Shown: positions 21,964 through 40,937 of the stretch, in pieces
How the letters are laid out: every line of letters begins with the position of its first letter
How positions within the stretch are numbered: the first letter of the stretch is position 1
IMG/VR virus record: IMGVR_UViG_3300028558_000016
Location: 248,001-312,000 of that record
Direction: 5' to 3' (one strand)
Length of the DNA: 64,000 bases
The notes under the pieces: model-generated
Seen by the model: only the letters and a program-made list of their open reading frames with translations
What the model was told of the DNA's origin: nothing
Databases searched by the model: none
Position numbers and translations under genes: made by a program

Positions 21964-22393
21964 TAATTTCATAAACGAAGAAGCTTCAACGTTGATTCCT
22001 GTAGTGAGATGGGCATCAAAGAAATACACCGCAGAAGAGTTGAAGCCTCAGAAGTTTGATTGGGGAGGATTCGAATCATTCGGTCTTTGCTTCACTCCTT
22101 TTAATGGTATGGAAGATCCAAGGATAAACTTCTGGAAGAAATTATTACAGAAGCATCACAACAAGGAATTGGTTGCTAATTTTTATTACCTCGATCTTTC
22201 CGACTTCCCGTTGAAGTCAGAAGCAGCATTGGTTGATTTCGCAAAGCTTACATATAATTCATTGAAGGCTGAACGAATGATGAAGACTGATTATAAGATA
22301 CACATGACTCTGACGAATGACTTTGGAACGGCACAGCTCGTTGAGATAAGATTATTGGAAGGTTGCACCATAAAAATATTGGACTACAAGTGA
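21944..22393 (+). CDS. Putative internal head protein
   Basis: MKIKRFNNFINEE. Confidence 0.55.
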   Translation: MKIKRFNNFINEEASTLIPVVRWASKKYTAEELKPQKFDWGGFESFGLCFTPFNGMEDPRINFWKKLLQKHHNKELVANFYYLDLSDFPLKSEAALVDFAKLTYNSLKAERMMKTDYKIHMTLTNDFGTAQLVEIRLLEGCTIKILDYK

Positions 22394-23175
22394 AGAAGAT
22401 AAAAACATATAACAATTTTCTATTAGAAAAAAAGATGGAAGCCTTTGTTGAGATTGCTAAACGCAACAACATGACAGAGGACTGCATGCATCTCGTTGTT
22501 TGGTGGGGACTAACCGGATATTTATATTACCACGGATTGCATGATAAGAATCCACCGATCACTAAAGAAGGAAAGAGAATGCTTAAAGTAATTTTTGATT
22601 CAGTGGTGAACGGAACTTATTCCGATTACATGAACCAAAGAATAACAGCAGAAGACGAGGATAACGATCCAATAGTTATGGAAGAAAACGTCTATAAGCA
22701 GATGGGAAAGAATTACATTGATGACACGTTCAATGCCAACCTTGTTGAATTGAAACACCCAATTAAAGTTTTCAAGGATTATTCCAAAGACAGATTTGTG
22801 ACTGGAAAAGATACTGCATGGTATTCATTCTCTGTAATAAAGGGGAGAGACCAAAACGCTTACGGAGATGCTTATATCTGTTACGAGCTTCCAGCAGGAT
22901 TCAAGTATCTCGATACAAGAGGCCTTGCAGAAAAAGGAGAGATACTCATAGACGGCAAAGACTTAACAGATGACATGATAATAAGCAATTCAAGCGAGAT
23001 GAAGATAGACCTTAAGAAAGGCGATGAGATATTAACTGGCAAGTGGCAGAACAAACATGATGAGGTTAAAAAGGTTGGAAAGAATGAATTAGGCCAACCA
23101 ACTATAAATGGTAAACCAATGTTGAAGTTCAGAATAAAGAGATTGATGCCAAAGAAAAAGAAGTCTGAAGAATGA
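22390..23175 (+). CDS. Putative internal head protein, possibly Alt/VIP2-like ART fold
   Basis: GTG start gives MKKIKTYNNFLLE; WYSFS...YG...EKGEILI resembles S-x-S and E-x-x-I/L motifs. Confidence 0.45.
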   Translation: MKKIKTYNNFLLEKKMEAFVEIAKRNNMTEDCMHLVVWWGLTGYLYYHGLHDKNPPITKEGKRMLKVIFDSVVNGTYSDYMNQRITAEDEDNDPIVMEENVYKQMGKNYIDDTFNANLVELKHPIKVFKDYSKDRFVTGKDTAWYSFSVIKGRDQNAYGDAYICYELPAGFKYLDTRGLAEKGEILIDGKDLTDDMIISNSSEMKIDLKKGDEILTGKWQNKHDEVKKVGKNELGQPTINGKPMLKFRIKRLMPKKKKSEE

Positions 23176-24173
23176 GACGCATAAAGCTATATGAAGAATT
23201 TGTCGTTCAACTCAATGAGCTGAACGCAAGTCCTTATTTCTGGAGATGGGACACCAACAAGACTGCAAAGTTTGAATCGCCTGACGATACTTACGAAGTA
23301 TTCTTCTTTAAAACCAAAGACGACAACACATACATAGCACATTACGAATCAAAGAAATACGGAACAAACAAATCAGGACCTGGATCAACAGGAAATGCAA
23401 TGAGAGTTCTTGCAACTGTAATGGACATCATAATAGCTTTCCTTGATCAGTTTCCTGAATACGACGTTGAATTCGTAGGAGACAAAGAAGAAGACGAGAA
23501 AGATGGTCCAACCAAGAGAGACAGAATATACAAGATGATGATGCAAGATCTTCCAGACAATTACAAATGGGAACTCGCATCAGACAAGAAAACAATTCAC
23601 ATAAGCAGGCAACACGTTTACGAAGACGTTAGCGGAATTGGTGGTGAAACATTCTACCATGGATCAACTGACAAGAATTTAGCTGGTCACAAGGGATTGC
23701 ATGTAGGAACTCGTGAGGCAGCAAAGGAAGCTCTTGAAGCAAGGATAGGAGTTCCAGCTGAAGGAGAATGGGATGGAACAAGAGAATATGGAAAGACTCT
23801 ATTAGCAGGACAAGACAGATTGAACAAGATAGAGAAGGAAGAAAAAAGATATGTGGCAACAGGTTTCAATTGTGGAAGCGATGTGCCAAAAGAAGATTAC
23901 TATCCGACAGACAGAAAGGAAAAAGCAACATACAGCGATGAGTCTGTTGTTCCAATGAACTGCAAGCCAATAATATTTCCAGTTAAAATAGTCGGTCACA
24001 TGACAAACACGCCTCAGCATCCATTGAGCGATTCCAAAGCGAATGGATTGATGAAAAGAAGCTTGACGGCAGGAAATGCTAAGAGCGGATTCTATTACAA
24101 GAACATCGGAGAGGACGAAGGGTCTATATCAGCTGTCGTTCCGGATAAGTCTTTCTTGAAACTTACCACTTAG
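23172..24173 (+). CDS. Two-domain putative internal head protein; C-terminal ART-like domain
   Basis: MRRIKLYEEF; TGNAMRVLATVMDII domain; FYHGST...GLHVGT..AA. Confidence 0.55.
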   Translation: MRRIKLYEEFVVQLNELNASPYFWRWDTNKTAKFESPDDTYEVFFFKTKDDNTYIAHYESKKYGTNKSGPGSTGNAMRVLATVMDIIIAFLDQFPEYDVEFVGDKEEDEKDGPTKRDRIYKMMMQDLPDNYKWELASDKKTIHISRQHVYEDVSGIGGETFYHGSTDKNLAGHKGLHVGTREAAKEALEARIGVPAEGEWDGTREYGKTLLAGQDRLNKIEKEEKRYVATGFNCGSDVPKEDYYPTDRKEKATYSDESVVPMNCKPIIFPVKIVGHMTNTPQHPLSDSKANGLMKRSLTAGNAKSGFYYKNIGEDEGSISAVVPDKSFLKLTT

Positions 24174-24299
24174 TTATTAACATTATAAATTCATAACTTG
24201 CTCACAAGTATGATACTAATGACGGATTAATGCCTACATTTGTGAGCCGTCAGTTTTTGGCCTTTGAGGTTCTCAGTATTAATATTTTGAATTAGTATA

Positions 24300-24488
24300 A
24301 TGCCAAAACAAATTTCAACTTATTCGTTGCAACAAGAGATTGTAGACAATGAAACCTACCATAATTTTTTCGTGAATTTCAGAAACCAAGGTGGAGATTT
24401 ATCCTTGCTTAAGGATTATTATCTCAAAGAGGAATTCCATTACAACAAGAGCTTAACCGAATCACTTAATGAAATTCCAAAGCCATGA
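24300..24488 (+). CDS. Small hypothetical protein
   Basis: ORF after an intergenic gap; ATGA-coupled to the next gene. Confidence 0.45.
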   Translation: MPKQISTYSLQQEIVDNETYHNFFVNFRNQGGDLSLLKDYYLKEEFHYNKSLTESLNEIPKP

Positions 24489-24742
24489 GACATAATAAAA
24501 CTTTTTCGGTGTATCTTATGAGATACATTTATGGAACACACTATGTTGGAGTCAATATAGATCCTGTCAAACATATTATAGAATTCAATAAAAGGAAAAA
24601 ATGTCAAGCCGTTCTCATCTATATTATATCCGATTTATCCATTATAGATGCAATAGACATTCAATTAAATCTTAAGAGTCAGAGCACCAATACTCTCGAA
24701 GAATATTTCCAAGAACACGGTAAACAAGTTATACATGTCTGA
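24485..24742 (+). CDS. Degenerate GIY-YIG (YhbQ/UPF0213-like) protein
   Basis: VYLMR...HYVG..D; canonical catalytic Arg and Glu positions hold His and Gln. Confidence 0.5.
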   Translation: MRHNKTFSVYLMRYIYGTHYVGVNIDPVKHIIEFNKRKKCQAVLIYIISDLSIIDAIDIQLNLKSQSTNTLEEYFQEHGKQVIHV

Positions 24743-24917
24743 AGATTTAAAATATAAAATGTTCTTGATTGACATCAAGAATCTGTGTGATCAACACGAC
24801 GACTTAGCGCCGATCTCTAATCTAATAAAAAATGGAATGACACGTTTGGAAAAAAAGCCTGGTCCGATCATAGAAAAAGAATTAAAGAAACCTATACCTC
24901 TTTATTTATTAAATTGA
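24735..24917 (+). CDS. Small hypothetical protein
   Basis: Overlapping co-oriented ORF. Confidence 0.45.
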   Translation: MSEDLKYKMFLIDIKNLCDQHDDLAPISNLIKNGMTRLEKKPGPIIEKELKKPIPLYLLN

Positions 24918-25278
24918 TGTGCATCTTCAGTATGTCACACAATTCCTCGCCGGCCTCTTTGAGATCGGAATCCTCGTAATACCAATTGATGGAAGCATTG
25001 TGAAACGCTTCCAATTTCCTGAATATCTTTATTAATTGCAACAGGCTTGATGGAGAGAAATATCCAAGGTCCACGTTGATCAGGAAATAAGAATTCTTGT
25101 CTTGAACTTTTAGGAAAGCATCAAGCCAATCTATTATTGGAAGATAAAATGATTTTGGATCTGTTGGAACTGAAACCCCTTTGATGTTAAAGATCCCATC
25201 CTTTGGAATGTACTCGAACGATGGAGACTTTTCTGTGGCCTTCATCCTTAAGGGGATATTGTACAAACCATCACTCAC
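24892..25278 (-). CDS. SiaC-family (DUF1987) regulatory protein
   Basis: ATEKSP...G.F.IKG.S.P.D...FY.PIIDWL...YFSPSS...LE...INWYY...EAGEE. Confidence 0.8.
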   Translation of the reverse strand: MSDGLYNIPLRMKATEKSPSFEYIPKDGIFNIKGVSVPTDPKSFYLPIIDWLDAFLKVQDKNSYFLINVDLGYFSPSSLLQLIKIFRKLEAFHNASINWYYEDSDLKEAGEELCDILKMHINLINKEV

Positions 25279-25294
25279 ATGTTAAATATACTAA

Positions 25295-26026
25295 TTATAA
25301 AGACAATCCTAAAATATTTCTATTATAAATCTTAGAAGCAAATAGATGATTGAGGACAGGGAATACGCTCTTCTTTGTGTCATAGCTTAAATCGCTCTCA
25401 ACAGCCACAAATAGATCATCAGACTTGTTCTCCTCTTCTAACACCTTAATCTTAACGTCTGTGAAATCTGCTTTGGTCGGCATGTCATAATATTTATGCA
25501 ATGAGAAAGTAACGTCCTTAAATGTGGAATCATAGATGAACTTGTAACACTCGAACACAGGTGAACCCGCATATCTCAATAACAAATATCCGGTGCTCTT
25601 GTCCAATGTTTTTCCAATGTAATAAAGCTTGATGTGTGATTCGATCTTCTTGAAAACCTCACCGCCCTGCTTTATGGATTCCTGCAATTTTTTTAATGAC
25701 CACTTAGCGATCTTAATTGCTTCCATCAAATCAGGATTGTTATCAGGTTGAGAGGCAACCTTCTTGAAATATTCTCTTTGTTCATCTGTAGGTGATGGAA
25801 CGTCTCTCAATTCGAGAAGAGATCTTATTGTAAGAAAGCATTCGATGTTTTTCGAATGGTATCGTGTTTCCTGCAGATAATCTGCAAGGTTGTTTCTCTT
25901 GAAACCTCTTTCCACCTTTTGAAGATAATCCATTAAAATGTACTGCTTATGCTCGAAATCGATAGGCGATTCGAGGAACCAAATGGGTGATAGTTTCATG
26001 CCGTTTGTAGTTTTCTTGCGTGCCAT
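25295..26026 (-). CDS. Conserved hypothetical protein of Bacteroidota type
   Basis: WFLESPIDFEHKQYILMDYLQ N-terminal motif. Confidence 0.6.
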   Translation of the reverse strand: MARKKTTNGMKLSPIWFLESPIDFEHKQYILMDYLQKVERGFKRNNLADYLQETRYHSKNIECFLTIRSLLELRDVPSPTDEQREYFKKVASQPDNNPDLMEAIKIAKWSLKKLQESIKQGGEVFKKIESHIKLYYIGKTLDKSTGYLLLRYAGSPVFECYKFIYDSTFKDVTFSLHKYYDMPTKADFTDVKIKVLEEENKSDDLFVAVESDLSYDTKKSVFPVLNHLFASKIYNRNILGLSL

Positions 26027-26033
26027 GTTTCAG

Positions 26034-26063
26034 TTTATATATTCATTAAATTTTCAATATATA
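26034..26063. promoter_or_regulatory. Back-to-back AATATATA motifs (divergent late promoters)
   Basis: tttatatattca (minus) and caatatatagg (plus) between divergent genes. Confidence 0.5.
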
Positions 26064-26090
26064 GGATAAGTAAAACCCATCAATCCATTC

Positions 26091-28211
26091 ATGAACGGTG
26101 CTCAATTAAAAATCAAACAAATCAAGGGTCTCAACGCAGAGCTCGCTGATAAGCTTTCAAAGAGTTTAGGCGGAACTGTTACCGGACCATTGACGATAGG
26201 TGGACCATTAGTGGTCACTGGGCCAACCATCATAAACACTGATCTTTCTTTACAAGGAGCTATAGTGGATTTTTATGGAAGTCCTGGACCTCCAGGATGG
26301 GTGCTAACCTCCACAGGAACAGCAACACAATGGGTGGATCCTTTAGGACCATTAGGTGTTTCAGGATTTAGTGGAACATCAGGTATCTCAGGTTACAGCG
26401 GAACATCAGGTGTTTCTGGTTACACAGGTGTAAGCGGTTATTCAGGTGTAAGCGGATTCTCTGGATATTCCGGAGACAGCGGTACAAGTGGAACAACAGG
26501 TATTTCAGGAACAAGCGGTGTTTCAGGTTTTTCTGGATACTCAGGCGTATCAGGATACTCTGGAACTTCTGGTATTTCAGGAACGAGCGGTATAAGTGGA
26601 ACAACAGGTGTAAGCGGATTTTCAGGATACACTGGAGCTTCAGGAACTTCTGGATTTACTGGTGTGTCAGGTTTTTCTGGATACTCAGGCGTGAGTGGTT
26701 TTTCTGGATACACAGGAACTTCTGGTATTTCAGGAACAAGCGGTATTAGTGGAACTTCTGGAATTTCTGGATACAGTGGTGTTTCAGGTTTTTCTGGTGT
26801 TAGTGGATGGTCAGGATCAAGCGGTATTTCTGGATTCAGTGGTTATTCAGGTGTAAGTGGATTCACAGGTGTGAGCGGTTACACTGGTGTTTCTGGATTC
26901 ACTGGAACTTCTGGTATTTCTGGATCATCTGGATATTTTGGACAAGATGGTATGTCAGGTTTTTCTGGATTCTCTGGATTCGGAATTTCTGGTTACTCAG
27001 GATATTCTGGAAACAATGGAGTTGCCGGTGGAGCTTTATACTATTTAAGAGATGAAGACTCAGATGTCCCAGGCTTTAAAGAATTAGATATAAATCCAGA
27101 TGGAATAGATCCTGAAGGATCTTATACAGCTGCTTGCGATAATACAACCGGCGAAGTATTAATAAAACAATTCTTAACTTTTCCATCAAACCCAGATCAG
27201 CTTTATATTTCAGGTGGTTCATGGATATTCGATACTTATGCCTCAGTAGACAACTCAGGCGGAGTTTCAAATATCGTAATAAGATTTTACAAGAGAGATC
27301 AATTTGGTATTGAGACTGAATTGTTCAACGTAACGACTGCAGAGATAAATGTCGTATCTCCTACATTATTTTCAAAAGAAATTCTCCAAGGAGAATTCAA
27401 TATAGCATTAACTGATAGATTATTAGTAAAGTATTTTGCAAAAACTACTTCAACGACAACAATTAACGTCAGCATTTATTTAGAAGGAAATACGCATGCA
27501 ACACATATTCACTCTCCTGTATCTTTCATAGGAGCTTCAGGTTTCTCTGGATGGTCAGGTTTTAGTGGAACTTCAGGAACTTCTGGATTCACAGGAGTTT
27601 CAGGATTTACGGGTGTGAGCGGATATAGCGGTGTTTCAGGTTTTTCTGGTGTAAGCGGATTCACAGGTGTCAGTGGTGTTTCAGGTTTCTCTGGATATTC
27701 TGGAACAAGTGGAACATCTGGTTATAGTGGAACATCTGGTTTTTCAGGCGTGTCAGGTTACTCTGGAACTTCTGGATTCTCTGGATATTCTGGAACATCA
27801 GGCTTCACAGGCGTCAGCGGTTTCTCAGGTATTTCTGGAGACTCAGGTGTTAGCGGATTCACAGGAGCAAGTGGAACATCCGGTTTTTCAGGCGTGTCAG
27901 GTTACTCTGGAACTTCTGGATTCTCTGGATATTCTGGAACAAGTGGAACATCCGGTTATAGTGGATTTAGCGGAGTTTCTGGATATTCTGGTGTAAGTGG
28001 ATTCTCAGGTGTTTCAGGATTTAGCGGATACTCAGGAACATCCGGATTCTCTGGTTACAGCGGAACAAGTGGATTTACCGGTGTCAGTGGATTCAGCGGC
28101 GTTAGCGGATTTTCAGGAACCTCTGGATTATCTGGAACTTCTGGATTTTCAGGAACCTCTGGATTTGATGCAGGTATTCTTGCATTGATCATCAATAGTC
28201 TTGGCTTGTAA
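26091..28211 (+). CDS. Collagen-like (Gly-X-Ser)n fibre protein with a central globular domain
   Basis: Two long [12 protein letters not shown] tracts flanking a roughly 170 aa beta-rich domain. Confidence 0.75.
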   Translation: MNGAQLKIKQIKGLNAELADKLSKSLGGTVTGPLTIGGPLVVTGPTIINTDLSLQGAIVDFYGSPGPPGWVLTSTGTATQWVDPLGPLGVSGFSGTSGISGYSGTSGVSGYTGVSGYSGVSGFSGYSGDSGTSGTTGISGTSGVSGFSGYSGVSGYSGTSGISGTSGISGTTGVSGFSGYTGASGTSGFTGVSGFSGYSGVSGFSGYTGTSGISGTSGISGTSGISGYSGVSGFSGVSGWSGSSGISGFSGYSGVSGFTGVSGYTGVSGFTGTSGISGSSGYFGQDGMSGFSGFSGFGISGYSGYSGNNGVAGGALYYLRDEDSDVPGFKELDINPDGIDPEGSYTAACDNTTGEVLIKQFLTFPSNPDQLYISGGSWIFDTYASVDNSGGVSNIVIRFYKRDQFGIETELFNVTTAEINVVSPTLFSKEILQGEFNIALTDRLLVKYFAKTTSTTTINVSIYLEGNTHATHIHSPVSFIGASGFSGWSGFSGTSGTSGFTGVSGFTGVSGYSGVSGFSGVSGFTGVSGVSGFSGYSGTSGTSGYSGTSGFSGVSGYSGTSGFSGYSGTSGFTGVSGFSGISGDSGVSGFTGASGTSGFSGVSGYSGTSGFSGYSGTSGTSGYSGFSGVSGYSGVSGFSGVSGFSGYSGTSGFSGYSGTSGFTGVSGFSGVSGFSGTSGLSGTSGFSGTSGFDAGILALIINSLGL
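26352..27010 (+). repeat. Coding 9-nt-period Gly-X-Ser repeat tract (limits approximate)
   Basis: Translation [14 protein letters not shown]... Confidence 0.85.
27531..28165 (+). repeat. Coding Gly-X-Ser repeat tract containing an exact 60-nt direct repeat
   Basis: 27738-27797 is identical to 27882-27941 (144 nt apart). Confidence 0.85.
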
Positions 28212-28233
28212 AGATCAAAATATATAAAAGAGA

Positions 28234-29001
28234 ATGATCAGGTTAGACACAGTAAATAAGTCGATTAGAATTTATTCGGATGCTACAGCAACTACGAATG
28301 AACCAAATTATGCAACATCATGGGATGACATAAGAGTGGTAAACCCGCAGTTCACGCCAGGCAGTCAAGATGGAGCTTTAAATGGAACAACGCCGATTGC
28401 AGTAATTTCTGCGCCGGCTTCTTCAATATACAGAAATATAAAATACATCCATGTTGCGAATGTAGACACAGTTCAACACGTAATAACAGTTGAGCTTTTA
28501 AATAATGGAACACAAAGAACTCTTTTAAAAGTAACGCTTGGAATAGGAGAAGAATTAATATTCAACGATGGTTCTGGCTGGATGACGTTAGACAATATTG
28601 GCGAACTGAAAATCACCGGTAATTCCGGAGCTAACATCAAGGTTGGTCAAATAGGTTTCGGCATCGATAACAATGGAAGTGTATTAACAACAGGAACAAA
28701 AGCTTATGCAGTAGTCCCTTTCTCAGGAACGATAGTCTCATGGGAATTGTTTTCAGATGTTGCAGGAAACGTTGTGATAGATGTTTGGAAAGCTCCCTAT
28801 GCGAGTTATCCGCCAACAGTGGCAAACACCATAACAGGAACAGATAAGCCAACGCTCTCTTCTCAACAGAAGAATGTTGACACGGTTCTTACTGGATGGG
28901 GAAACCAAGTAGTCAATGCAGGAGATATTTTTGCGTTCAATATAGATTCAGTATCAACGATAACGAGACTCAACGTGAGCCTCAAAATAATTAAAGACTA
29001 A
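28234..29001 (+). CDS. Virion/fibre-associated protein, paralog of 31300..32691
   Basis: Shared roughly 130 aa N-domain MIRLDT.NKS.RI.SDATATT.EP; C-domain DVWKAPYASYPPT. Confidence 0.7.
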   Translation: MIRLDTVNKSIRIYSDATATTNEPNYATSWDDIRVVNPQFTPGSQDGALNGTTPIAVISAPASSIYRNIKYIHVANVDTVQHVITVELLNNGTQRTLLKVTLGIGEELIFNDGSGWMTLDNIGELKITGNSGANIKVGQIGFGIDNNGSVLTTGTKAYAVVPFSGTIVSWELFSDVAGNVVIDVWKAPYASYPPTVANTITGTDKPTLSSQQKNVDTVLTGWGNQVVNAGDIFAFNIDSVSTITRLNVSLKIIKD

Positions 29002-29005
29002 AAGC

Positions 29006-31132
29006 ATGTCAAAGAAAGCAATAGATTTCGTATTCACAGGAGCAACCACACCAATCGCTTCTTACGATTCAACAAAGACCAACATTGGAACTTTGATCAA
29101 ACAATATACAGGAGCTCTCGCAACAGATAAGTTTGCAGGCCCAGAAATAGTTTCTGTCGCAAGACCAGGTGAAGCTTCCACTTCCATATTCGGAGGATTT
29201 CCATATATCGTACAATTTTCTACGACAATTGATTGGGTTTTCCTTGCAGAAAACTCTGCTGCCGCTGTGACAAGAAGAATAATCTGGTATGAATTTAATA
29301 AGACTACTCAAGTCTTTACGTGGAAAGGATTCATCACACTAACATACCCAGCTGCGACCGCACACACCATAAGAGGTTTAAGCGTAACAAAAGATAATTA
29401 CACCACTGGAACTGTAGCCGTCTCAGGAACTACTGTGACTGGAACAGGTTCTTTATGGTTAACTGAACCACAATCATTAGGTTCAAGAATAGGATTTGGA
29501 ACAACCGATCCAACCGCTGTAACAACGTGGTTTGAAATCTCTGCTATAGGATCAGACACATCCATAACATTAACATCAACTGCAGGAAGCATACCTGCTG
29601 GAACTGCTTATGTCATTGAAGATTTAAGAGTCTATACTGCGACAACAAATGCTACATTAACCAATGGCGGTTTATTTGTTACTAAAGGTTTAAGAATAGA
29701 AAACTTTTCAACGGGTGGAACAACAATTTCAGCTGCTGTAACAACCGATAACATAAGAGCTGTTTACTGGTTGGCTGATGCTTCAACTGTCACAAATACT
29801 GTAGCAGGTGGTTTATATGTCGACACGAGATCTTCATGGACTAACCAAGTTGCTTACATCGTCAACGTGACAGCTGCGACAACTCCAGCTATTTATGTCT
29901 ATAATACAAGAGCAGCCTTAACGCTTGCCGCAGGAAAAGACACAACAACAAACACCATAAAGACCGGAGTTCAAACCGTAACAGGTAACGTTTCTCAGGT
30001 AGGAAATGGAATTCTTGCAACGCTTTCTCATGGACCCGGTTCAGGAGTTAAGTGTCTTTATTTTGCAACAACCTCAAGAATAATCAGAGTAGACCTTGCA
30101 AATATTACCGCAGCTTCTACAACTTTCGTATCAGACTCGATGGTTGAGGTTCCACCAGGATCTTCGACAACATATCCTTTGACTGCAGTAATGTCTCATG
30201 TTTTATATTCTTCGATGATCGACAGACTTGTAATTCTTACGACCTCAGCAGCAGGACAAAGAGGTTATGTTACACAATACAACACGACCTCAGCACAATT
30301 CGATCACATATTTTTAATAGATGACAAGAACCAGGATCAATCAACTGCTGCGGTAGGATCAATTCCTTATCCATCTCTTTCAAACACGCAGATGGTAGGA
30401 GGGATGCTAAATGGAAGAATGTTTATTGTAAGAAACTCTGCTGCGGCAACTTTAAACCAGATGTACAATCTTCCAATAGGAGCACATTGGGCTTATACTT
30501 CTACATCAAATCAGGTCTTGATAACTCCAAGCATTCCAACAACGAATGCCTTGAAATTCTATAGACTTTATGTAAACGAGATAAAAAGATTAGGAACAGA
30601 TCCTTATGTAATTCAACCGGAACCTTACAAAATGTATGCAAGAACTTCTGGTATTTCTACAAATTTAGGAACATGGACTCTCATAAACGATGATGGAGAT
30701 CTTTCAGGATTAACACCTACTTCCGAAATACAAATCAAATTGGAATTCAACATTCTTGGAAGATATTGCATTCCTTCGAGAATAATGTCTTTGGCAGTCG
30801 TCTTTGAAGACACCACGACGGATTCACACTATGAACCTTCTATCGCGAACTCGAATGTTTCTACAAACGTATTCGCCTTCAGACAATCAACGGCTTTCGG
30901 ATCAAACATCCCTAACTTAAGGATTCAATTGTTCAACGCTGTAACAGGAGTTCCTATAATAGATGACAACGTAACGTCTTCAGCTTTTGGAACTTTCCAG
31001 TATTCTTCTAACAACGGATTATCGTGGAATGCATGGAGCAATACCCAGGATGTTGTAGGAAATTACATAAGATATACAGCAACTTCTCTGCCAGGATCTA
31101 CGAGAATTAGAGCTCTATTGACGCAAGCATAA
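29006..31132 (+). CDS. Large Thr-rich beta-structured virion/tail protein
   Basis: 708 aa, T/S/G/A-rich; YTTGTVAVSGTTVTGTG tail-protein-like motif. Confidence 0.65.
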   Translation: MSKKAIDFVFTGATTPIASYDSTKTNIGTLIKQYTGALATDKFAGPEIVSVARPGEASTSIFGGFPYIVQFSTTIDWVFLAENSAAAVTRRIIWYEFNKTTQVFTWKGFITLTYPAATAHTIRGLSVTKDNYTTGTVAVSGTTVTGTGSLWLTEPQSLGSRIGFGTTDPTAVTTWFEISAIGSDTSITLTSTAGSIPAGTAYVIEDLRVYTATTNATLTNGGLFVTKGLRIENFSTGGTTISAAVTTDNIRAVYWLADASTVTNTVAGGLYVDTRSSWTNQVAYIVNVTAATTPAIYVYNTRAALTLAAGKDTTTNTIKTGVQTVTGNVSQVGNGILATLSHGPGSGVKCLYFATTSRIIRVDLANITAASTTFVSDSMVEVPPGSSTTYPLTAVMSHVLYSSMIDRLVILTTSAAGQRGYVTQYNTTSAQFDHIFLIDDKNQDQSTAAVGSIPYPSLSNTQMVGGMLNGRMFIVRNSAAATLNQMYNLPIGAHWAYTSTSNQVLITPSIPTTNALKFYRLYVNEIKRLGTDPYVIQPEPYKMYARTSGISTNLGTWTLINDDGDLSGLTPTSEIQIKLEFNILGRYCIPSRIMSLAVVFEDTTTDSHYEPSIANSNVSTNVFAFRQSTAFGSNIPNLRIQLFNAVTGVPIIDDNVTSSAFGTFQYSSNNGLSWNAWSNTQDVVGNYIRYTATSLPGSTRIRALLTQA

Positions 31133-31150
31133 AAATAAAATATTAAAAAT

Positions 31151-31300
31151 ATGCCAGTAGATGATATAGTTTTCCAAAGCAATCCACCATTCATTTTAGA
31201 AGTTCCCGCACAGACACCAGGAACAATAAGAGCATTATCGCTTGATGGAGTATTCGATTTTACAAATGCTACTGAAATAATAACGATTCAAATCAGCTAA
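31151..31300 (+). CDS. Small protein (49 aa, not in the ORF track)
   Basis: MPVDDIVFQSNPPF...ITIQIS; TAATG-coupled to the next gene. Confidence 0.5.
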   Translation: MPVDDIVFQSNPPFILEVPAQTPGTIRALSLDGVFDFTNATEIITIQIS

Positions 31301-32691
31301 TGATTAGATTAGACACCATAAACAAATCACTAAGGATCTTCTCAGATGCCACAGCAACGACAACAGAACCAGTCTTTGTTACGGCATTCGATGACATCAA
31401 TTCCACGACTCCGGTGTTAACGCCTGGAAGCAGTGATGGTGCAACTGTTGGAAATACTCCACAAACTGCAGTAGCTTCTCCGGTAGCTTCCATCTACAGA
31501 AATGTAAAATATGTAAACGTATTCAACAGTGACACAGTTTCACACGTCATCACCGTTGAACTATTAAACAATGCTACCACCAGAACCTTAATAAAAGTAA
31601 CACTTAAAACGAGTGAGCAATTAATATACAATGATGGAGATGGCTGGGGAGTTATCACAGCTTTAGGAGAAAAGAAAGTAACCGGTGTTTCAGGATTCAG
31701 TGGATTCTCAGGAGTTTCTGGAATTGGAACCTCAGGATTTTCTGGATATTCTGGAGTAAGCGGCTTCTCAGGTGTTTCAGGTTTTTCTGGAATTTCTGGA
31801 TATTCCGGTGTTTCTGGATTCTCTGGAACCTCAGGATTTTCTGGATATTCTGGAGTAAGCGGTTATTCTGGTGTCAGCGGATTCTCTGGTTATTCTGGAG
31901 TTTCTGGATTTACTGGAGTCTCCGGACAAACAGGTGTTTCGGGTTTCTCTGGAATTTCTGGTCAATCTGGCGTTAGCGGATTCACAGGAGTTTCTGGATT
32001 TTCCGGCTACACAGGCGTTTCAGGTTTTACGGGTGTTAGCGGATTTTCAGGCATTTCTGGTGATTCAGGTGTTAGTGGTTTTACTGGATATTCTGGAATT
32101 TCTGGATACAGCGGAACTTCCGGTTTCTCTGGATATTCTGGAATAAGTGGAACTTCAGGCATCTCAGGTTTTACAGGAGTAAGCGGTTACACAGGTGTTT
32201 CAGGTTTCACGGGAGTCAGCGGATTCTCTGGATATTCTGGAGTGTCGGGCTATTCCGGAACTTCAGGATTCTCAGGTTATTCCGGTACTTCCGGCTTCAC
32301 AGGAACCTCAGGTTTTTCTGGAATTTCTGGAGATCCTTCTCTTGGATTAATCACAATGAGAGCATCAAGAGCTTCAGCAAATACCACAAACATTTATCTG
32401 AGAGATATGGATGGCAATCCAATGAACCAAGCTCCTTTGGTGATGCCATACAATGGAACGATAATAAATATTTCTGCATCATCTAACACTGCTGGTCCTG
32501 GCGCATGGTCTGCAGAAGTAAGAGATAATGGAACTTTAATAGCAGGAGCAGTGATAAATATGACAGCAGTTCAAACATCAAACTTTGGAACATATTCGGT
32601 GAACGTTAATGCTGGTGCACTTCTAATGATATTCATGACAGGAACTTCCATAGATAGACCTGCAATAACAGTATTAATAAAGAGAAGATAA
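31300..32691 (+). CDS. Collagen-like (Gly-X-Ser)n fibre protein
   Basis: Paralogous N-domain, repeat tract at about 31684-32331, C-terminal beta domain. Confidence 0.75.
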   Translation: MIRLDTINKSLRIFSDATATTTEPVFVTAFDDINSTTPVLTPGSSDGATVGNTPQTAVASPVASIYRNVKYVNVFNSDTVSHVITVELLNNATTRTLIKVTLKTSEQLIYNDGDGWGVITALGEKKVTGVSGFSGFSGVSGIGTSGFSGYSGVSGFSGVSGFSGISGYSGVSGFSGTSGFSGYSGVSGYSGVSGFSGYSGVSGFTGVSGQTGVSGFSGISGQSGVSGFTGVSGFSGYTGVSGFTGVSGFSGISGDSGVSGFTGYSGISGYSGTSGFSGYSGISGTSGISGFTGVSGYTGVSGFTGVSGFSGYSGVSGYSGTSGFSGYSGTSGFTGTSGFSGISGDPSLGLITMRASRASANTTNIYLRDMDGNPMNQAPLVMPYNGTIINISASSNTAGPGAWSAEVRDNGTLIAGAVINMTAVQTSNFGTYSVNVNAGALLMIFMTGTSIDRPAITVLIKRR

Positions 32692-32699
32692 ACATATAA

Positions 32700-34937
32700 A
32701 TGGCTCCATATTTTAAAATAACTACAACAGGAACAAGCCCATCAACGGTCATTTTATATGATCTTGGTGAGAGAACTTTTACACATCCTACTGTAGATTT
32801 AGATCTTCTTTTAGAATTTTCTTTAGAAGAAATCCAGAATTCTCTGGATCTTATTACTGCAATAGATGCTGGAAGATTAACGGCAAATTTAGACGGAACA
32901 TCCGTAACTACTGCCGATCAATTCTATGCAAACCTCACGAGCGTTTCAGGATATTCTGGAATAAGTGGAACTTCAGGATTCTCTGGATACTCAGGGGTTT
33001 CTGGATATTCTGGAACTTCTGGAATAAGTGGAACATCAGGAATTTCTGGATATTCCGGAGTTTCTGGTTACACGGGCGTTTCAGGTTTTAGCGGCGTATC
33101 AGGTTTTTCTGGCGTAAGCGGATGGTCAGGAACATCGGGAATTTCTGGGTTTAGTGGAATTTCTGGATGGTCGGGAACAAGCGGAATTTCAGGAACCTCT
33201 GGTATTTCAGGAACTTCAGGAGTATCCGGATTTTCAGGAACCTCTGGATATTCTGGAACTTCCGGCTTCTCAGGTTACTCAGGAACCTCAGGTTTTTCTG
33301 GATATTCTGGAATAAGTGGAACATCAGGAATCTCCGGATTTTCTGGAGTTTCAGGTTTCACTGGAGTATCTGGTCTATCGGGTTTCTCTGGAAAAGCAGA
33401 CAGATATTTAACTTCCTCAACAACTTCTTTAACGATACCTGTTGGATCTCCAGCAGTGCAAACATTAACCGTTGAAGCAGGATTAGCATATTCAGTTGGA
33501 CAAGGCATTGTAGTTGCAAATGATTCAACACATTTATTCACAGGAGAAGTTCAATCTTACAATAATGTTTCTGGAGTTTTAGTTGTTATAGTTCAAACAG
33601 AATTAGGAACAGGAACATTTACTTCATGGACAGTTAACCTCGACGGAGTTCAAGGCGTTCAAGGAAATTCCGGTATTTCTGGATTTTCTGGAATAGCCGT
33701 ATCAGGTTTCTCTGGATATTCTGGTGTTAGCGGTTTTAGTGGAGTTTCTGGATTTACAGGAGTTTCTGGTTATTCTGGCTTCACAGGAGTTTCAGGATTC
33801 AGCGGATATTCTGGTGTGAGCGGTTACAGTGGAACATCAGGATTTTCTGGTGTTTCAGGTTTTTCAGGTTACAGCGGAGTCTCTGGATTTTCTGGAGTTT
33901 CAGGTTATTCTGGAACATCAGGCGTTAGCGGATTTTCAGGAATTAGCGGATATAGTGGAACTTCAGGTTTCACAGGAACTTCAGGCGTATCAGGTTATTC
34001 AGGCGTATCAGGTTTCACGGGAGTCTCCGGATTTAGTGGATATTCTGGTGTTAGCGGATTCACAGGTGTGAGCGGTTATTCCGGATTTTCTGGTGTGAGC
34101 GGTTACAGTGGAACATCGGGTTACTCAGGAACTTCCGGTTATTCTGGAACTTCTGGTACATCCGGTTTTTCGGGAGTTAGTGGATATTCTGGAGTTTCAG
34201 GATTTACCGGAGCTTCAGGTGTCTCTGGATTTAGCGGTGTTTCTGGTTACAGTGGAACATCAGGATTTAGTGGATATTCTGGAGTGAGCGGATATAGTGG
34301 AACTTCCGGTTTCTCTGGATATTCCGGTGTTTCAGGTTATTCTGGAGTTTCAGGATTTACCGGAGCTTCAGGTGTTTCAGGATTCACTGGAGCAAGCGGT
34401 GTTTCAGGTTTTTCAGGCGTGAGTGGATTCTCTGGATATTCTGGAGTTTCTGGATTCTCAGGTACATCTGGAAAGAGCGGATTTTCTGGAGTTTCTGGAA
34501 ATCCTCCGACATCTTCTTATGCAGAAATGTACATGACTGGTAATGGAACTGCGACAGCAGTTGTTACTGTTTCTGTTCCATTAAAAGTTGCAGGAACTAC
34601 GACAGCAGGAGATAAGACTTCTGATTGGACCCATGCTTCTAATAAGCTAACATATACCGGAACAACTACACAGGAGTTCTTCTTGAATGTTTCTTTCTCA
34701 GCAAATTCTGCTTCGGCTTCAAAGAGCTTTAGCTTCTTTGTTTACAAGAATGGTTCAGCTGTTTCAAAGTCTCAGATCAATAACTTCTTAAGAAGTTCTG
34801 GTGATGATTTTGCTGGAGGCGTTTCATGTTTGATCTCTTTAGCAACAAATGATTTTGTTGAACTGTGGACACAGAACAATACTTCGGCATCGGATGTTAC
34901 GGTATCTTATATGAATTTTAACCTTACAAGAATATAA
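32700..34937 (+). CDS. Collagen-like (Gly-X-Ser)n fibre protein with a C1q/TNF-like head
   Basis: Two repeat tracts around [13 protein letters not shown]...GLAYSVGQ; C-terminal [13 protein letters not shown]. Confidence 0.75.
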
Positions 34938-34938
34938 A

Positions 34939-36963
34939 ATGAGGATAGCAGTTTTAAATAGCGACGGATTAAAGACCACACAGGACGATCAGCTTAAGTA
35001 TTATTTTACTGTGGCAGATGGAACAGTTTTTCCAGGATCTCCTGCGATGACTGATGTTACTTCGCCAGATACTTTATATCTTTTCTTCAGATTTAATAGA
35101 CTCGATTATTTTATTTTTAAAGCTTCTGCTGTGTTATATGTGATTCCGAATTGGAATAGTTTGACATCGATTCAACAGGGTTATTATACGTCGAATTACA
35201 TATTTCCAGGTGGCCATACTATATTAGATTATTATACGCAAACAGAAGTATATGAACTTAATCAGGATTTATTTTTAAGACCAGACGTAGTTTCTTTTGA
35301 TCCTACGTTGTTGACTGCTCCACTTGTCATACAGCTTCCAGATACTGGATTGACTGGAAAAATGATTACTACTCAGAACTTATCTGATGGTATCGGAGCA
35401 TCGGGAGTTTCTGGATTTACGGGAGTTTCTGGTAAAAGTGGAGTATCTGGTTATTCTGGATTTACGGGAGTTTCTGGTTTTTCTGGATACAGTGGAGTAT
35501 CAGGTTTTTCTGGATATTCTGGAATAAGTGGTTACTCTGGAACATCCGGTTATTCTGGATTTACGGGAGTATCTGGATATTCTGGAGCTTCAGGAACATC
35601 CGGTTTGCAAGGTCCTAATGGACTTTCTGGTGTTAGCGGTGTTAGCGGTTATTCAGGAGTTTCGGGCTTCTCTGGGGTCTCAGGATTCAGTGGGTCTGGT
35701 GTTTCTGGGTTTAGCGGTTATTCAGGTGTTAGCGGTTTTAGTGGGTATTCTGGAGTTTCCGGTTTTTCAGGAACTTCAGGTGTTAGTGGATTTTCGGGGA
35801 TCGGGACATCTGGATTTACGGGGGTTTCTGGATTTAGTGGTTACTCAGGGGTTTCTGGTTTTTCTGGAATTAATGGAACTAATGGTACAAATGGAACATC
35901 TGGTTTTTCTGGTGTTAGCGGATATTCAGGAACTTCTGGAATAGGAACTTCAGGTTTTTCTGGAATAGGAACATCTGGTTTCTCTGGATATTCTGGAGTT
36001 AGTGGATATTCCGGAGTTTCAGGATACACTGGAACTTCTGGAGCAACTGGTCCAACAGGAACTTCAGGATTTAGTGGATATTCAGGTGTTAGTGGTTACT
36101 CAGGTGTTAGTGGATTTACAGGAGCTTCCGGTGTTTCCGGTTTTTCAGGAGCATCTGGGAAATCTGGTTTCTCTGGTACTAATGGAACTAACGGTGCTGT
36201 TGGAACTTCTGGAACTTCCGGATTTAGTGGTTACACAGGTGTATCTGGATTTTCAGGAATTAATGGAACTAACGGAACTTCAGGTTTCTCTGGAACAAGT
36301 GGAGTTTCAGGATTTAGTGGTTTCTCTGGAAAATCTGGATTCTCAGGAACTAACGGAACAAATGGTGCTGCAGGTACTTCTGGAACTTCAGGTGTTAGCG
36401 GATTTTCTGGAGTCATTGCTCCTGTCTTGACGACCAAAGGAGATATATTAACTTTTTCAACAGTGAATGCAAGATTACCTGTTGGAACTAATGGACAGAT
36501 ATTGTTTTCGGATTCTACACAAACTAACGGAATTAAATGGTCTAATGGAGCAAATGCACAATCATCTCCTACAGATCCAGCGACAACAGCTTCAACAACT
36601 GGTGTTATGATGGGATTAGCAGGAACTATCACACCGGTTACAACAGGAACTATAATGGTAATTATTTCTGGAGATTATGATATTACTGGAACAGGAGATT
36701 CAGGCCAAATTCAAATGAGAACAGGAACAGGAACAGCTCCTACAAATGGAGCTGCTTTAACAGGAACTACAAGAGGTGGTCTCGTTAAATTTTTAAATGG
36801 ATCAAGTGCACCGGCTTCTTCAAAAAGAGAAGCATGGAGTTTAAATTGTATAATAACAGGATTGACAGTTGGAACAGCAGTATGGATCGATGTAAGTCAG
36901 GCTTCTCCATCAGGTGGTACTTTTAGAGCAAGGGACATAAGCATCTCAGCAATTGAAATATAA
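34939..36963 (+). CDS. Collagen-like (Gly-X-Ser/Asn)n fibre protein
   Basis: Repeat tract at about 35395-36410; LTTKGDIL...RLPVGTNGQIL fibre motif; C-terminal beta head. Confidence 0.75.
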   Translation: MRIAVLNSDGLKTTQDDQLKYYFTVADGTVFPGSPAMTDVTSPDTLYLFFRFNRLDYFIFKASAVLYVIPNWNSLTSIQQGYYTSNYIFPGGHTILDYYTQTEVYELNQDLFLRPDVVSFDPTLLTAPLVIQLPDTGLTGKMITTQNLSDGIGASGVSGFTGVSGKSGVSGYSGFTGVSGFSGYSGVSGFSGYSGISGYSGTSGYSGFTGVSGYSGASGTSGLQGPNGLSGVSGVSGYSGVSGFSGVSGFSGSGVSGFSGYSGVSGFSGYSGVSGFSGTSGVSGFSGIGTSGFTGVSGFSGYSGVSGFSGINGTNGTNGTSGFSGVSGYSGTSGIGTSGFSGIGTSGFSGYSGVSGYSGVSGYTGTSGATGPTGTSGFSGYSGVSGYSGVSGFTGASGVSGFSGASGKSGFSGTNGTNGAVGTSGTSGFSGYTGVSGFSGINGTNGTSGFSGTSGVSGFSGFSGKSGFSGTNGTNGAAGTSGTSGVSGFSGVIAPVLTTKGDILTFSTVNARLPVGTNGQILFSDSTQTNGIKWSNGANAQSSPTDPATTASTTGVMMGLAGTITPVTTGTIMVIISGDYDITGTGDSGQIQMRTGTGTAPTNGAALTGTTRGGLVKFLNGSSAPASSKREAWSLNCIITGLTVGTAVWIDVSQASPSGGTFRARDISISAIEI

Positions 36964-36971
36964 ATACTAAA

Positions 36972-37631
36972 ATGAAGATAGCAAAACTTAAAACAACAGA
37001 TGTCCAAGAAACAAGCCAAGGAATCTTGGACAATTATTATGCAGTTCAAGACACACACGTGTTTGATATAACAGAAGATGATGTTACTTCTGTGACCACT
37101 CTTTCTGTATTCAATCAAGGATATGTGTTCGATTATCAAGTGTTCAGAGACTCGTTGATGACAAACATTGTTCCACAGTGGGCCAACATCTTATATGAGG
37201 ACAGAAAGAAATGTGTTCAACATTACAAATATCCTGCAAACATAAGCCAGGAAGAATTCGATAATTACTTCACACAAGCTGACCACGAAAAGAACTGGAG
37301 CGTCATAACAACTTTATCAAGAGCGACAAGGCTTCAGAGATTGTTTGCCGCTTTCCAAAAAATTTCTTATGAATTGACGCAAGCACAGGTTGCTACAATA
37401 TACATGACGACAAAGATGATGTTGATCGATTACTACTACGCGAATCTTCCACATATTTTATTTTGGATTCAGAACGGAGTTTATCCTCCAATGGGCATTA
37501 ATTTTACGACAAATGGTTTTCAACAAATGAGCGGCTTCTCTCCTACTTTGGAGATGCAACTCTTGGACATCCTCGTTAATGGTAATTATATAAACACCAG
37601 CAATGAGATAACTGGAATAAAAGTATTTTAA
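36972..37631 (+). CDS. Hypothetical protein of the fibre module
   Basis: Co-oriented, directly after the fibre genes. Confidence 0.6.
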   Translation: MKIAKLKTTDVQETSQGILDNYYAVQDTHVFDITEDDVTSVTTLSVFNQGYVFDYQVFRDSLMTNIVPQWANILYEDRKKCVQHYKYPANISQEEFDNYFTQADHEKNWSVITTLSRATRLQRLFAAFQKISYELTQAQVATIYMTTKMMLIDYYYANLPHILFWIQNGVYPPMGINFTTNGFQQMSGFSPTLEMQLLDILVNGNYINTSNEITGIKVF

Positions 37632-40349: not shown

Positions 40350-40937
40350 ATGGAGTACAAAGAATTCAAGGATAAACACAAAGGGCAAAAGATCATGGTG
40401 GTTGGTTGTGGGACTTCAACTGGAACGTTGACCAACCCACAAGACTACATCACAGTTGGCGTCAACGATCTATCGCGCCTCTTTCATCCCAACTACCTCG
40501 TTGTGTTGAATGACAAATCAAGCTTTGAACACGACAGATGGCAATGGATCGAAGGAACACATTGCCCACACATATTCACACACATAAGAAATTTAGCAGT
40601 CAAGGAAGAATCAAGGATACCATTGCAGCTTGGAAGATATGGCGGAACAGACCTTAACAAGGATGCCGTCGATTACACTTCAAATTCCACCTACGTCGCC
40701 TGCATCATTGCGGCTTACATGGGAGCTTCCAAGATAGGATTGCTTGGTGTTGATTTCACTCTCAATCATTTCTTCGCACAATCAGGAGAGCATTCATTGG
40801 CTAAGAAGGCAAACGTGATCAACATGGAATACGCAGCATTGAAGGTTGCGATGGACATGAAGGGAATAGAGTTTGTGAATCTTTCTCAAACGTCAAAGAT
40901 TACTGCTTTGCCTAAGCAAACAATAGAAGAATTTTAA
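40350..40937 (+). CDS. Maf/DUF115-like glycosyltransferase-fold protein
   Basis: KDKHKGQKIMVVGCGTS...ITVGVND...NSTY.A...AAYMGASKIGLLGVDF. Confidence 0.7.
   Translation: MEYKEFKDKHKGQKIMVVGCGTSTGTLTNPQDYITVGVNDLSRLFHPNYLVVLNDKSSFEHDRWQWIEGTHCPHIFTHIRNLAVKEESRIPLQLGRYGGTDLNKDAVDYTSNSTYVACIIAAYMGASKIGLLGVDFTLNHFFAQSGEHSLAKKANVINMEYAALKVAMDMKGIEFVNLSQTSKITALPKQTIEEF

Follow-up and report, generated by a model that had tools for sequence, protein, structure and literature searches.

The closest described systems to the proteins discussed here are BclA and BclA3, from the exosporium hairs of Bacillus and Clostridioides. They have an N-terminal anchor, a collagen-like stalk with a hydroxyl residue at the Y position of its Gly-X-Y repeats, and a C-terminal trimeric head of the TNF/C1q type. 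In C. difficile, the GT2-type glycosyltransferase (GT) SgtA is encoded beside bclA3 and adds O-linked N-acetylglucosamine (O-GlcNAc) to Thr in the collagen repeats, and it also accepted test peptides containing Ser (PMC7157674). Phages have collagen-like fibres of their own, including PHROG families 5073, 6320 and 1806, the E. coli prophage collagens, HylP and P5 of PRD1, in which modular heads are carried on Gly-X-Y stalks (PMC3368898). The subject of this study is a group of four genes (A, D, E and F) at positions 26091-36963 of a 64,000-nucleotide stretch of DNA (G000:C1:248001-312000, “the window”) from a 482,156-bp virus genome with 37% G+C in IMG/VR. Their products share the Pfam family and the fibre annotation of those phage proteins and are collagen-like phage fibres of BclA-like build, a known kind; what is new is their distinct and widespread composition and the link of this composition to a cassette of GT genes. 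The chances are, in our judgement, slightly better than even that A, D, E and F are trimeric collagen-like virion fibres, probably O-glycosylated on their Ser positions, as in the BclA3-SgtA pair.

The four proteins together hold 474 Gly-X-Y triplets (147 in A, 72 in D, 145 in E and 110 in F). The Y position is Ser in 398 of them (84%) and Thr in another 44 (9%), giving a hydroxyl residue in 93% of the triplets. The X position is Phe in 122 triplets, Val in 111, Tyr in 84 (18%), Thr in 78, Ile in 35 and Trp in 4, and is thus aromatic in 44%. Pro fills only 5 of the 948 X and Y places (0.5%), and charged residues are few. Uninterrupted runs number 71, 5 and 71 triplets in A, 5 and 67 in D, 50, 6 and 89 in E, and 34, 11, 15 and 50 in F. 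All four proteins match Pfam Collagen (PF01391) at 110-210 bits, with A at 208 bits and the cut-off at 27.2 bits, and chance can, on these counts, be excluded as the source of the pattern. The original prediction, which had placed several hundred Gly-X-Ser triplets with a nearly fixed Ser at 26091-36963, is borne out, as is its view that the repeats are of collagen type, given the Pfam matches and a strict period of three over up to 89 triplets.

It had also called the composition unlike that of typical bacterial collagens, and this holds as well: the bacterial norm is Pro at X and Thr at Y, and phage collagens are described in the same review as short, about 18 residues (PMC8968730). Described phage collagens are either short or rich in Pro, Thr or charged residues, whereas the proteins here have 72-147 triplets each, Ser at Y and an X position with its large aromatic share. 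The usual stabilisers of a collagen helix, which are Pro and hydroxyproline (Hyp) or, in bacteria, Pro at X, Thr at Y and charge pairs, are not what the fibre repeats contain. BclA itself has mostly Gly-Pro-Thr repeats, while in the phage proteins X is aromatic or beta-branched.

The aromatic residues are not placed at random. Consecutive triplets both carry one at X in 47 cases, where shuffles give 89 +/- 5 (z = -8.1), and a spacing of two triplets is over-represented (z = +3.9). This means that the actual repeat unit tends to be Gly-Ar-Ser-Gly-(Val/Thr/Ile)-Ser, where Ar is an aromatic residue. Such patterning suggests a functional surface, and one could consider that the proteins form collagen triple helices that bear no sugar, in which exposed Phe and Tyr alternating with Val, Thr and Ile make a sticky stripe that bundles the fibres or binds host polysaccharide directly, and the GTs modify something else, for instance DNA, glycans of the host surface, or proteins of the capsid or tail. 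We hold this to be unlikely, although it deserves to be taken seriously; the hydroxyl residue at Y, conserved through both families of Ser codons, argues against it, and so does the gene neighbourhood discussed below.

At the DNA level, the repeat copies have diverged (60-85% matches), and Ser at Y is written with 298 TCN codons and 100 AGY codons. The two codon families do not interconvert through single silent steps. The divergence and the use of both families therefore indicate that selection on the protein, and not recent slippage, accounts for the pattern. We see only the slimmest chance that the arrays arose in assembly or that the genes are decaying and unexpressed. It is true that short-read contigs break inside the repeats, that no single contig among four runs spans the arrays, so that the exact repeat numbers rest on the original assembly, and that no RNA run holding the region was found. 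However, the four frames are open for 463-745 codons with folded domains intact at both ends, syntenic homologues exist in a 373-kb phage, and there are hundreds of relatives. Support also comes from Logan contigs of three further rhizosphere runs: apart from 0-3 differences, they agree with most of D, E and the first half of F, to about position 36140. The F repeats beyond that point and the F head have no depth in those runs. One run (X2) has a contig with an in-frame 9-bp insertion at 33772, which adds one Gly-X-Y triplet and is in-frame length variation between populations. Open reading frames (ORFs) of 100-140 codons also occur in other frames or on the opposite strand within the repeats (27667-27996, 33167-33475, 35528-35944, 36002-36430 and 36231-36632). 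These are unlikely to be genes, since they are open merely through the absence of stop codons in the repeat DNA.

The C-terminal 143 residues of E (34506-34934, residues 603-745) are modelled as a jelly roll with the ten strands of that fold, at a predicted local distance difference test (pLDDT) value of 93.7. In Foldseek, this head finds its relatives at E 3e-6, with probability 1.0 and template modelling (TM) scores of 0.55-0.75. The top matches are BclA (3tyj), BxpB, ExsFA, EDA and the fibre domain of cyanophage A-1(L) (8ke9), and further matches include 4-1BBL, RANKL and the gC1q domain of C1QTNF5. The head has no Pfam C1q, TNF or BclA_C match, and a sequence search of the heads and of the domain inserted in A against PDB chains gave no meaningful match (E <= 1); the likeness is one of fold alone. 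The same is true of the comparison with the C1q/TNF superfamily as a whole, which shares the plan of a collagen stalk with a trimeric jelly-roll head and has a different stalk chemistry. The expectation of beta-rich, partly C1q-like heads is thus right for E, whereas A ends in a hydrophobic tail of 13 residues.

When residues 552-745 of E were modelled in three copies, the score was 0.94, compared to 0.00 for the best of 3 controls, with a pLDDT of 88. Three runs agreed in at least 96% of contacts. Repeat residues 554-603 of all three copies lie in the predicted interface, and the head-to-head contacts are predicted with confidence. The mark for this score is one that 21 of 30 solved one-chain pairs reach and 0 of 23 single chains do. 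The trimer modelling that had been proposed as a check therefore supports, as a prediction, a three-stranded rod with a trimeric knob.

The alternative that the repeats are not a collagen helix at all, and instead adopt some other beta or extended fold, build polyglycine-II (PGII) bundles or serve as disordered low-complexity linkers of the FUS [S/G]Y[S/G] type, strikes us as quite improbable. It draws on the near absence of Pro and on the low triple-helix propensity that the X and Y residues found here have in peptide models. The single-chain models of the whole proteins in the Atlas are also poor (pLDDT 0.45-0.46), which would be expected of the monomer of a trimer and of disorder alike. In known PGII bundles, a turn is required roughly every 10 residues; here, stretches of up to 267 residues keep Gly strictly in every third place and contain no turn motifs. 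Each of the four proteins exceeds the Pfam Collagen cut-off, a jelly-roll head that is predicted to be trimeric comes right after the repeats with every modelled repeat residue in contact, and the length variants are in frame and consist of whole triplets. A disordered linker would not need an invariant spacing of Gly.

Two specific candidates of this kind were tried and rejected. FUS-type domains and PGII bundles resemble the phage repeats in richness in Gly, Ser and Tyr and in a Gly-based extended conformation, and the original prediction had mentioned both. The PGII bundle of the snow-flea antifreeze or S16 gp38 type is a poor fit, as neither turn nor break motifs occur within the runs. The low-complexity domain of the FUS type, with its idea of an [S/G]Y[S/G] gel, does not match a spacing that is strictly periodic, an X position that is as often Val, Thr or Ile as Tyr or Phe (Tyr alone being just 18%), and repeats placed between folded domains.

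The gene neighbourhood provides the argument for sugars. Three Gly-X-Ser gene contexts picked at random had GT genes close by. Among 79 IMG/VR loci anchored on the stalk, homologues of a GT2, GT2 and GT9-like set are found in 40, including 32 of the 42 loci with at least 2 kb of downstream sequence and 20 of the 25 with at least 5 kb. In 37 of these 40 positive loci, the enzyme genes come after the fibre gene and share its strand, at a median distance of 48 bp, and the order is fibre, GT2, GT2, GT9-like. Clustering of the GT2b sequences yields 25 groups at 80% identity and 8 at 60%. The search also works in the other direction. An alignment of two GT homologues (a single GT protein as query gave none) found 357 relatives in IMG/VR; of 80 loci retained, 37 have a Gly-X-Ser ORF, and in every case it shares the strand of the enzyme gene. 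Where at least 3 kb of upstream sequence was available, the Gly-X-Ser ORF is upstream in 29 of 52 loci, and within 1.5 kb in 19. In contrast, 80 control loci anchored on UvsX/RecA (1.29 Mb) hold neither the GT set (0/80) nor an aromatic Gly-X-Ser ORF (0/80). Fisher tests of these comparisons give p = 8e-16 and 6e-9 for loci that are not independent, and the UvsX control matches the genomic context less well than a tail-fibre control would. The GT-positive contigs of at least 80 kb that have no fibre gene next to the enzymes carry a collagen elsewhere in 3 of 3 cases. The linkage between collagen and GT genes is a new result that had gone unremarked.

The window genome has orthologues of the cassette at C1:88.7-92.6 kb, about 180 kb from the fibre genes. 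The first is an enzyme of 599 residues with two GT2 domains, which is 36% identical over 602 residues (E 7e-116) to the enzyme beside the metagenomic Gly-X-Ser protein P0095. The second, of 710 residues, joins a GT2 domain, a methyltransferase domain and a GT9-like module, and its C-terminus is 39% identical to a 154-residue GT9-like protein beside P0095. By sequence, the GT2-GT2 enzyme has no match in the PDB, and the second enzyme has generic GT2 matches only, the best of them GalT1 (5hea) at 1e-9. Six huge phages were compared, and only those two with aromatic Gly-X-Ser fibres also have the GT2-GT2 enzyme: in the window genome and the 373-kb phage both occur, unlinked, and three others have neither. 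Since Gly-X-Ser genes usually lie just upstream of a GT set that this phage also has, its serines are probably glycosylated. The suggestion that the repeats might be a scaffold for glycosylation, raised as one option in the original prediction, thus gains support; the bare “aromatic-coated” surface it imagined may not exist if the adjacent Ser residues bear glycans. As side observations, the cluster around the enzymes (G000:C1:88707-97955) also holds a ribonucleotide reductase, an ATP-grasp protein of the type associated with sugar transfer (541 residues) and a GT2-like protein (217 residues), and a 195-residue protein at 40350-40937, 3.4 kb downstream of the fibre block, has a weak PHROG match to alpha-2,3-sialyltransferase (2.7e-7) and no Pfam match.

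These data also bear on the unlikely case in which the fibres carry no sugar. In its favour, the enzymes are unlinked from the fibres in the window genome and in the 373-kb phage, and the GTs of aquatic phages have been assumed to target DNA or the cell wall (PMC10202952). Work cited in PMC12619734 describes mycobacteriophages that encode their own GTs near structural genes and decorate virion proteins, and there the glycans are on capsid and tail-tube C-termini; here the target would be the periodic Ser of a collagen stalk, and the cassette is a different one. On the other side, there is a GT set that follows the fibre gene on the same strand at so short a median distance in at least 8 to 25 sequence lineages, that is absent from every control locus, and that tracks aromatic Gly-X-Ser fibres in the six huge phages. 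Collagen glycosylation by GTs of a virus is described for Mimivirus, where the target, unlike here, is hydroxylysine in a collagen rich in Pro and Lys (PMC8968730).

In the glycosylated trimeric fibre that we favour, an N-terminal domain would dock the protein on the particle, and each protein would continue into a long collagen-type stalk, or two of them, made of Gly-(Phe/Tyr/Val/Thr/Ile)-Ser triplets. The arrays would be about 60-125 nm long if the rise is like that of collagen. The beta-sandwich head at the C-terminus of D, E and F would trimerise and set the register of the chains, and these heads probably bind the host surface. O-linked sugars on the near-invariant Ser, at the exposed Y position, would stabilise and coat the proline-free stalk. 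Enzymes encoded by the phage, with two GT2 domains and a GT9-like module and here also a methyltransferase domain, would attach these sugars in the host cytoplasm; in most smaller phages, the enzyme genes lie just downstream of the fibre gene. Speculatively, the adjacent aromatic residues might contribute to what the enzymes recognise, or they might stack on the sugars. The data show the sequence pattern, the match to the collagen family, the fold of the head, a predicted trimer, the shuffling of modules and the gene linkage; we infer the formation of the triple helix, the action of the GTs on the fibre, the choice of Ser as the site and the position of the fibre on the virion.

The parallel with BclA3 is what leads us to read the column of Ser as a glycosylation array, and the parallel has its differences. 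BclA is carried by a spore and the fibres here presumably by a phage virion, and the heads have no sequence similarity. The phage enzyme set has three or four GT domains, whereas SgtA has a GT-TPR layout and is unrelated in detail. Glycosylation is described for BclA3 and predicted for the phage fibres. A wider proposal is that these proteins represent an undescribed and widespread class of “glyco-collagen” fibre, in which O-glycans on Ser at Y, possibly stacked on the X aromatics of neighbouring chains, replace Pro as the stabiliser, and a dedicated, co-inherited GT2/GT2/GT9-like cassette, with or without the methyltransferase, installs them. We put this forward tentatively and would sooner expect it to fail than to hold. 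If it is true, the sugar coat, besides the head, would shape host recognition or protect the fibre.

Several points weigh against a glycosylated collagen fibre and need to be kept in mind. In the host-guest peptides of Persikov and colleagues from 2000, Phe, Tyr and Thr at X and Ser at Y are reportedly among the least helix-favouring residues, so an unmodified stalk might be only marginally stable. The triple helix, the trimer and the glycan are all predictions, and the trimer score of 0.94 may partly reflect memory, as predictors readily make Gly-X-Y triple helices and BclA-like trimers have been solved. The loci behind the linkage counts lack phylogenetic independence. In the window genome, the GTs do not adjoin the fibre genes, the presence pattern among six genomes is a small one, and the 735-kb phage with Gly-Thr-Ser proteins has no homologue of the GT2-GT2 enzyme. 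The enzymes could instead have a different virion protein, glycans of the host envelope or DNA as their substrate. Also, no RNA run with the fibre region was found, and the anchor of D, which has no clear structural relative, gives no clue to the attachment site.

The rules of collagen stability derive from animal sequences rich in Pro and Hyp and from a few bacterial ones rich in Pro and Thr or in charges. A large natural family that has hardly any proline, with Ser at Y and aromatics at X, either is an exception to these rules or uses another stabiliser, and the conserved enzyme cassette points to sugars. That O-glycans can substitute for imino acids in the triple helix has been proposed for the cuticle collagen of worms. 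The phage family turns this into a testable question, and the cultured phage P19250A offers a system for it. If the answer is yes, there would be a second kind of virion glycosylation, and many phage GTs that are now assigned to DNA or host cell walls would be reassigned. Collagen-like rods that are proline-free and independent of hydroxylase, with programmable heads, are also of interest as biomaterials.

The repeats are not peculiar to this phage; they belong to a large unnamed class in phage metagenomes with a member in one cultured phage. A word-based search with D found at least 1129 significant metagenomic proteins among 8000 scored candidates, all of them unnamed or called “hypothetical”; the sample is biased to the query's own words. 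In the top 120, Ser is found at Y in all (0.43-0.98), Pro is near zero in most, and X is 15-67% aromatic in nearly all, with a few of Gly-Thr/Ala-Ser composition that have no aromatics. IMG/VR holds at least 461 relatives of the D stalk. A tblastn search with whole D and E found their non-repeat domains only, in huge uncultured phages; it is blind to the repeats because the low-complexity filter hides them. The open-access papers searched gave nothing relevant for Gly-X-Ser motif strings in phages or for collagen-like proteins together with huge phages. Judging by these searches, the composition class is widespread in phage metagenomes and has no name.

The cultured member is in the Methylophilaceae phage P19250A (KX815270.1, region 21390-27040). 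Its gene P19250A_0023 codes for 1201 residues with 281 Gly-X-Ser triplets and is annotated as a “tail length tape-measure protein.” It comes after the genes for host-specificity protein J and tail fibres, and downstream of it are a methyltransferase-like gene, a GT2 gene and a GT9-like gene. The tape-measure label is a mis-annotation of a collagen-like Gly-X-Ser protein. Phage collagens of other compositions were seen along the way. The 735-kb phage (LR756501.1; locus L010 4677-13124 and other frames) has giant (Gly-Thr-Ser)n proteins of 1665-3488 residues, one of them with 778 triplets, and four of the UvsX-anchored control loci (L190 412-4281, L191 209-4273, L223 137-4273 and L198 2-3031) have collagens of 255-285 triplets with few aromatics and almost no Ser at Y, from which it follows that phage collagen-like proteins form several distinct composition classes. 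In the window genome itself, a fifth Gly-X-Ser protein is found outside the window (G000:C1:340353-343418), in a frame of 1022 residues with 38 triplets, Tyr, Thr or Phe at X and Ser at Y.

The fibre genes are part of a block of seven, A to G (26091-37631), which follow one another on the + strand, 1-167 bp apart, and encode 706, 255, 708, 463, 745, 674 and 219 residues. Gly-X-Y repeats are present in A, D, E and F and absent from B, C and G. The earlier count of four fibre proteins is right for A, D, E and F, with the correction that the region it covered also holds the repeat-free B (28234-29001) and C (29006-31132). The globular interruptions it described are there in A (165 residues) and E (82 residues); F has merely one-residue register breaks and one seven-residue break. 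PHROG tail-fibre families match the fibre proteins at up to 367 bits, in matches that rest largely on the repeats, and no recognised tail genes adjoin the block within the window.

Protein A (26091-28211) is called as a fibre from its ORF and repeat counts, Pfam Collagen and the collagen-type tail-fibre families of PHROG. It starts with 85 residues (26091-26345), followed by a first Gly-X-Ser run of 71 + 5 triplets (26346-27035), a beta-sandwich domain at residues 316-480 (27036-27530) and a second run of 71 triplets (27531-28169) ahead of its hydrophobic tail. In the Atlas model, the central domain resembles the jelly rolls of phage collagen proteins (TM 0.87-0.92) and domains of the PepX_C type (TM ~0.78), and it is common to the metagenomic proteins P0014, P0017, P0058 and P0095. 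Protein B is an anchor fused straight to a C-terminal head. Its anchor is 61% identical to that of D (BLASTP E 7e-55), which makes B a stalk-less sibling of D; its C-terminal region belongs with PHROG 35197 and 10330 (“virion structural protein”) by match, and this head caps metagenomic Gly-X-Ser proteins (P0015, P0020, P0050 and others) at their C-terminus. Protein C is rich in Thr, Ser and Ala and assigned to no family, with a weak match to tail-fibre PHROG 1591 only (9e-5) and none in Pfam. A DNA search of genes B and C against GenBank phages gave no match.

Proteins D, E and F are called as fibres from their ORFs, repeat counts and Pfam Collagen. In D (31300-32691), a beta-sandwich anchor of residues 1-128 (31300-31683) is followed by 72 triplets (31684-32337) and a head of residues 347-463 (32338-32688). 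The anchor is modelled at pLDDT 94.9 and is common to at least 11 metagenomic Gly-X-Ser proteins; against known structures, it gave no Foldseek match at E <= 0.001 and a VIA-align Z of at most 6.3. The D head is common to P0022 and the huge phages LR745206 and LR756500. E (32700-34937) has 83 N-terminal residues, a run of 50 triplets (32949-33398), the insert (33399-33644), which matches the 735-kb phage and P0001, and a second stalk of 6 + 89 triplets (33645-34505) that leads into the head. F (34939-36963) has an N-terminal domain of residues 1-152 (34939-35394) that is 51% identical to P0032/P0138 of the 373-kb phage, 110 triplets in four runs (35395-36417), and a head of residues 494-674 (36418-36960), whose matches in the Atlas are phage clusters (TM 0.65-0.76) and a cluster that bears C1q (TM 0.55), a lead only. 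Protein G (36972-37631) also matches the N-terminus of P0032, and its first ~100 residues are related to those of F (27% identity, BLASTP E 3e-9), so G is probably a second partner for the attachment site of F. Relatives recombine these parts. For example, P0022 consists of the N-terminus of A, a stalk and the head of D, and proteins with the E head frequently have no collagen at all. Anchors, inserts, stalks and heads are reshuffled among relatives, and the fibre proteins are modular.

The source genome is that of a huge phage from the rhizosphere, kin of the Lak phages and of phages of 460-735 kb. The nearest relatives of its UvsX are in uncultured huge phages of 462-735 kb and in Lak megaphages, and nearly identical DNA is present in several rhizosphere metagenomes. 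Besides UvsX, the window codes for a split T4-type DNA polymerase B, both subunits of topoisomerase VI, a protein like poly(ADP-ribose) polymerase (PARP) and AAA ATPases. An alternative genetic code was considered and rejected, every frame being open under table 11. The gene for topoisomerase VI subunit B (3030-4700; Topo-VIb transducer 2e-44) adjoins that for subunit A (4705-5856; TOP6A/Spo11 Toprim 1e-37); this is an enzyme of archaeal and eukaryotic type and unusual in a phage genome. The PARP-like protein, of 482 residues, is encoded at 55353-56801 and has the catalytic domain of that family (Pfam PARP 5e-26).

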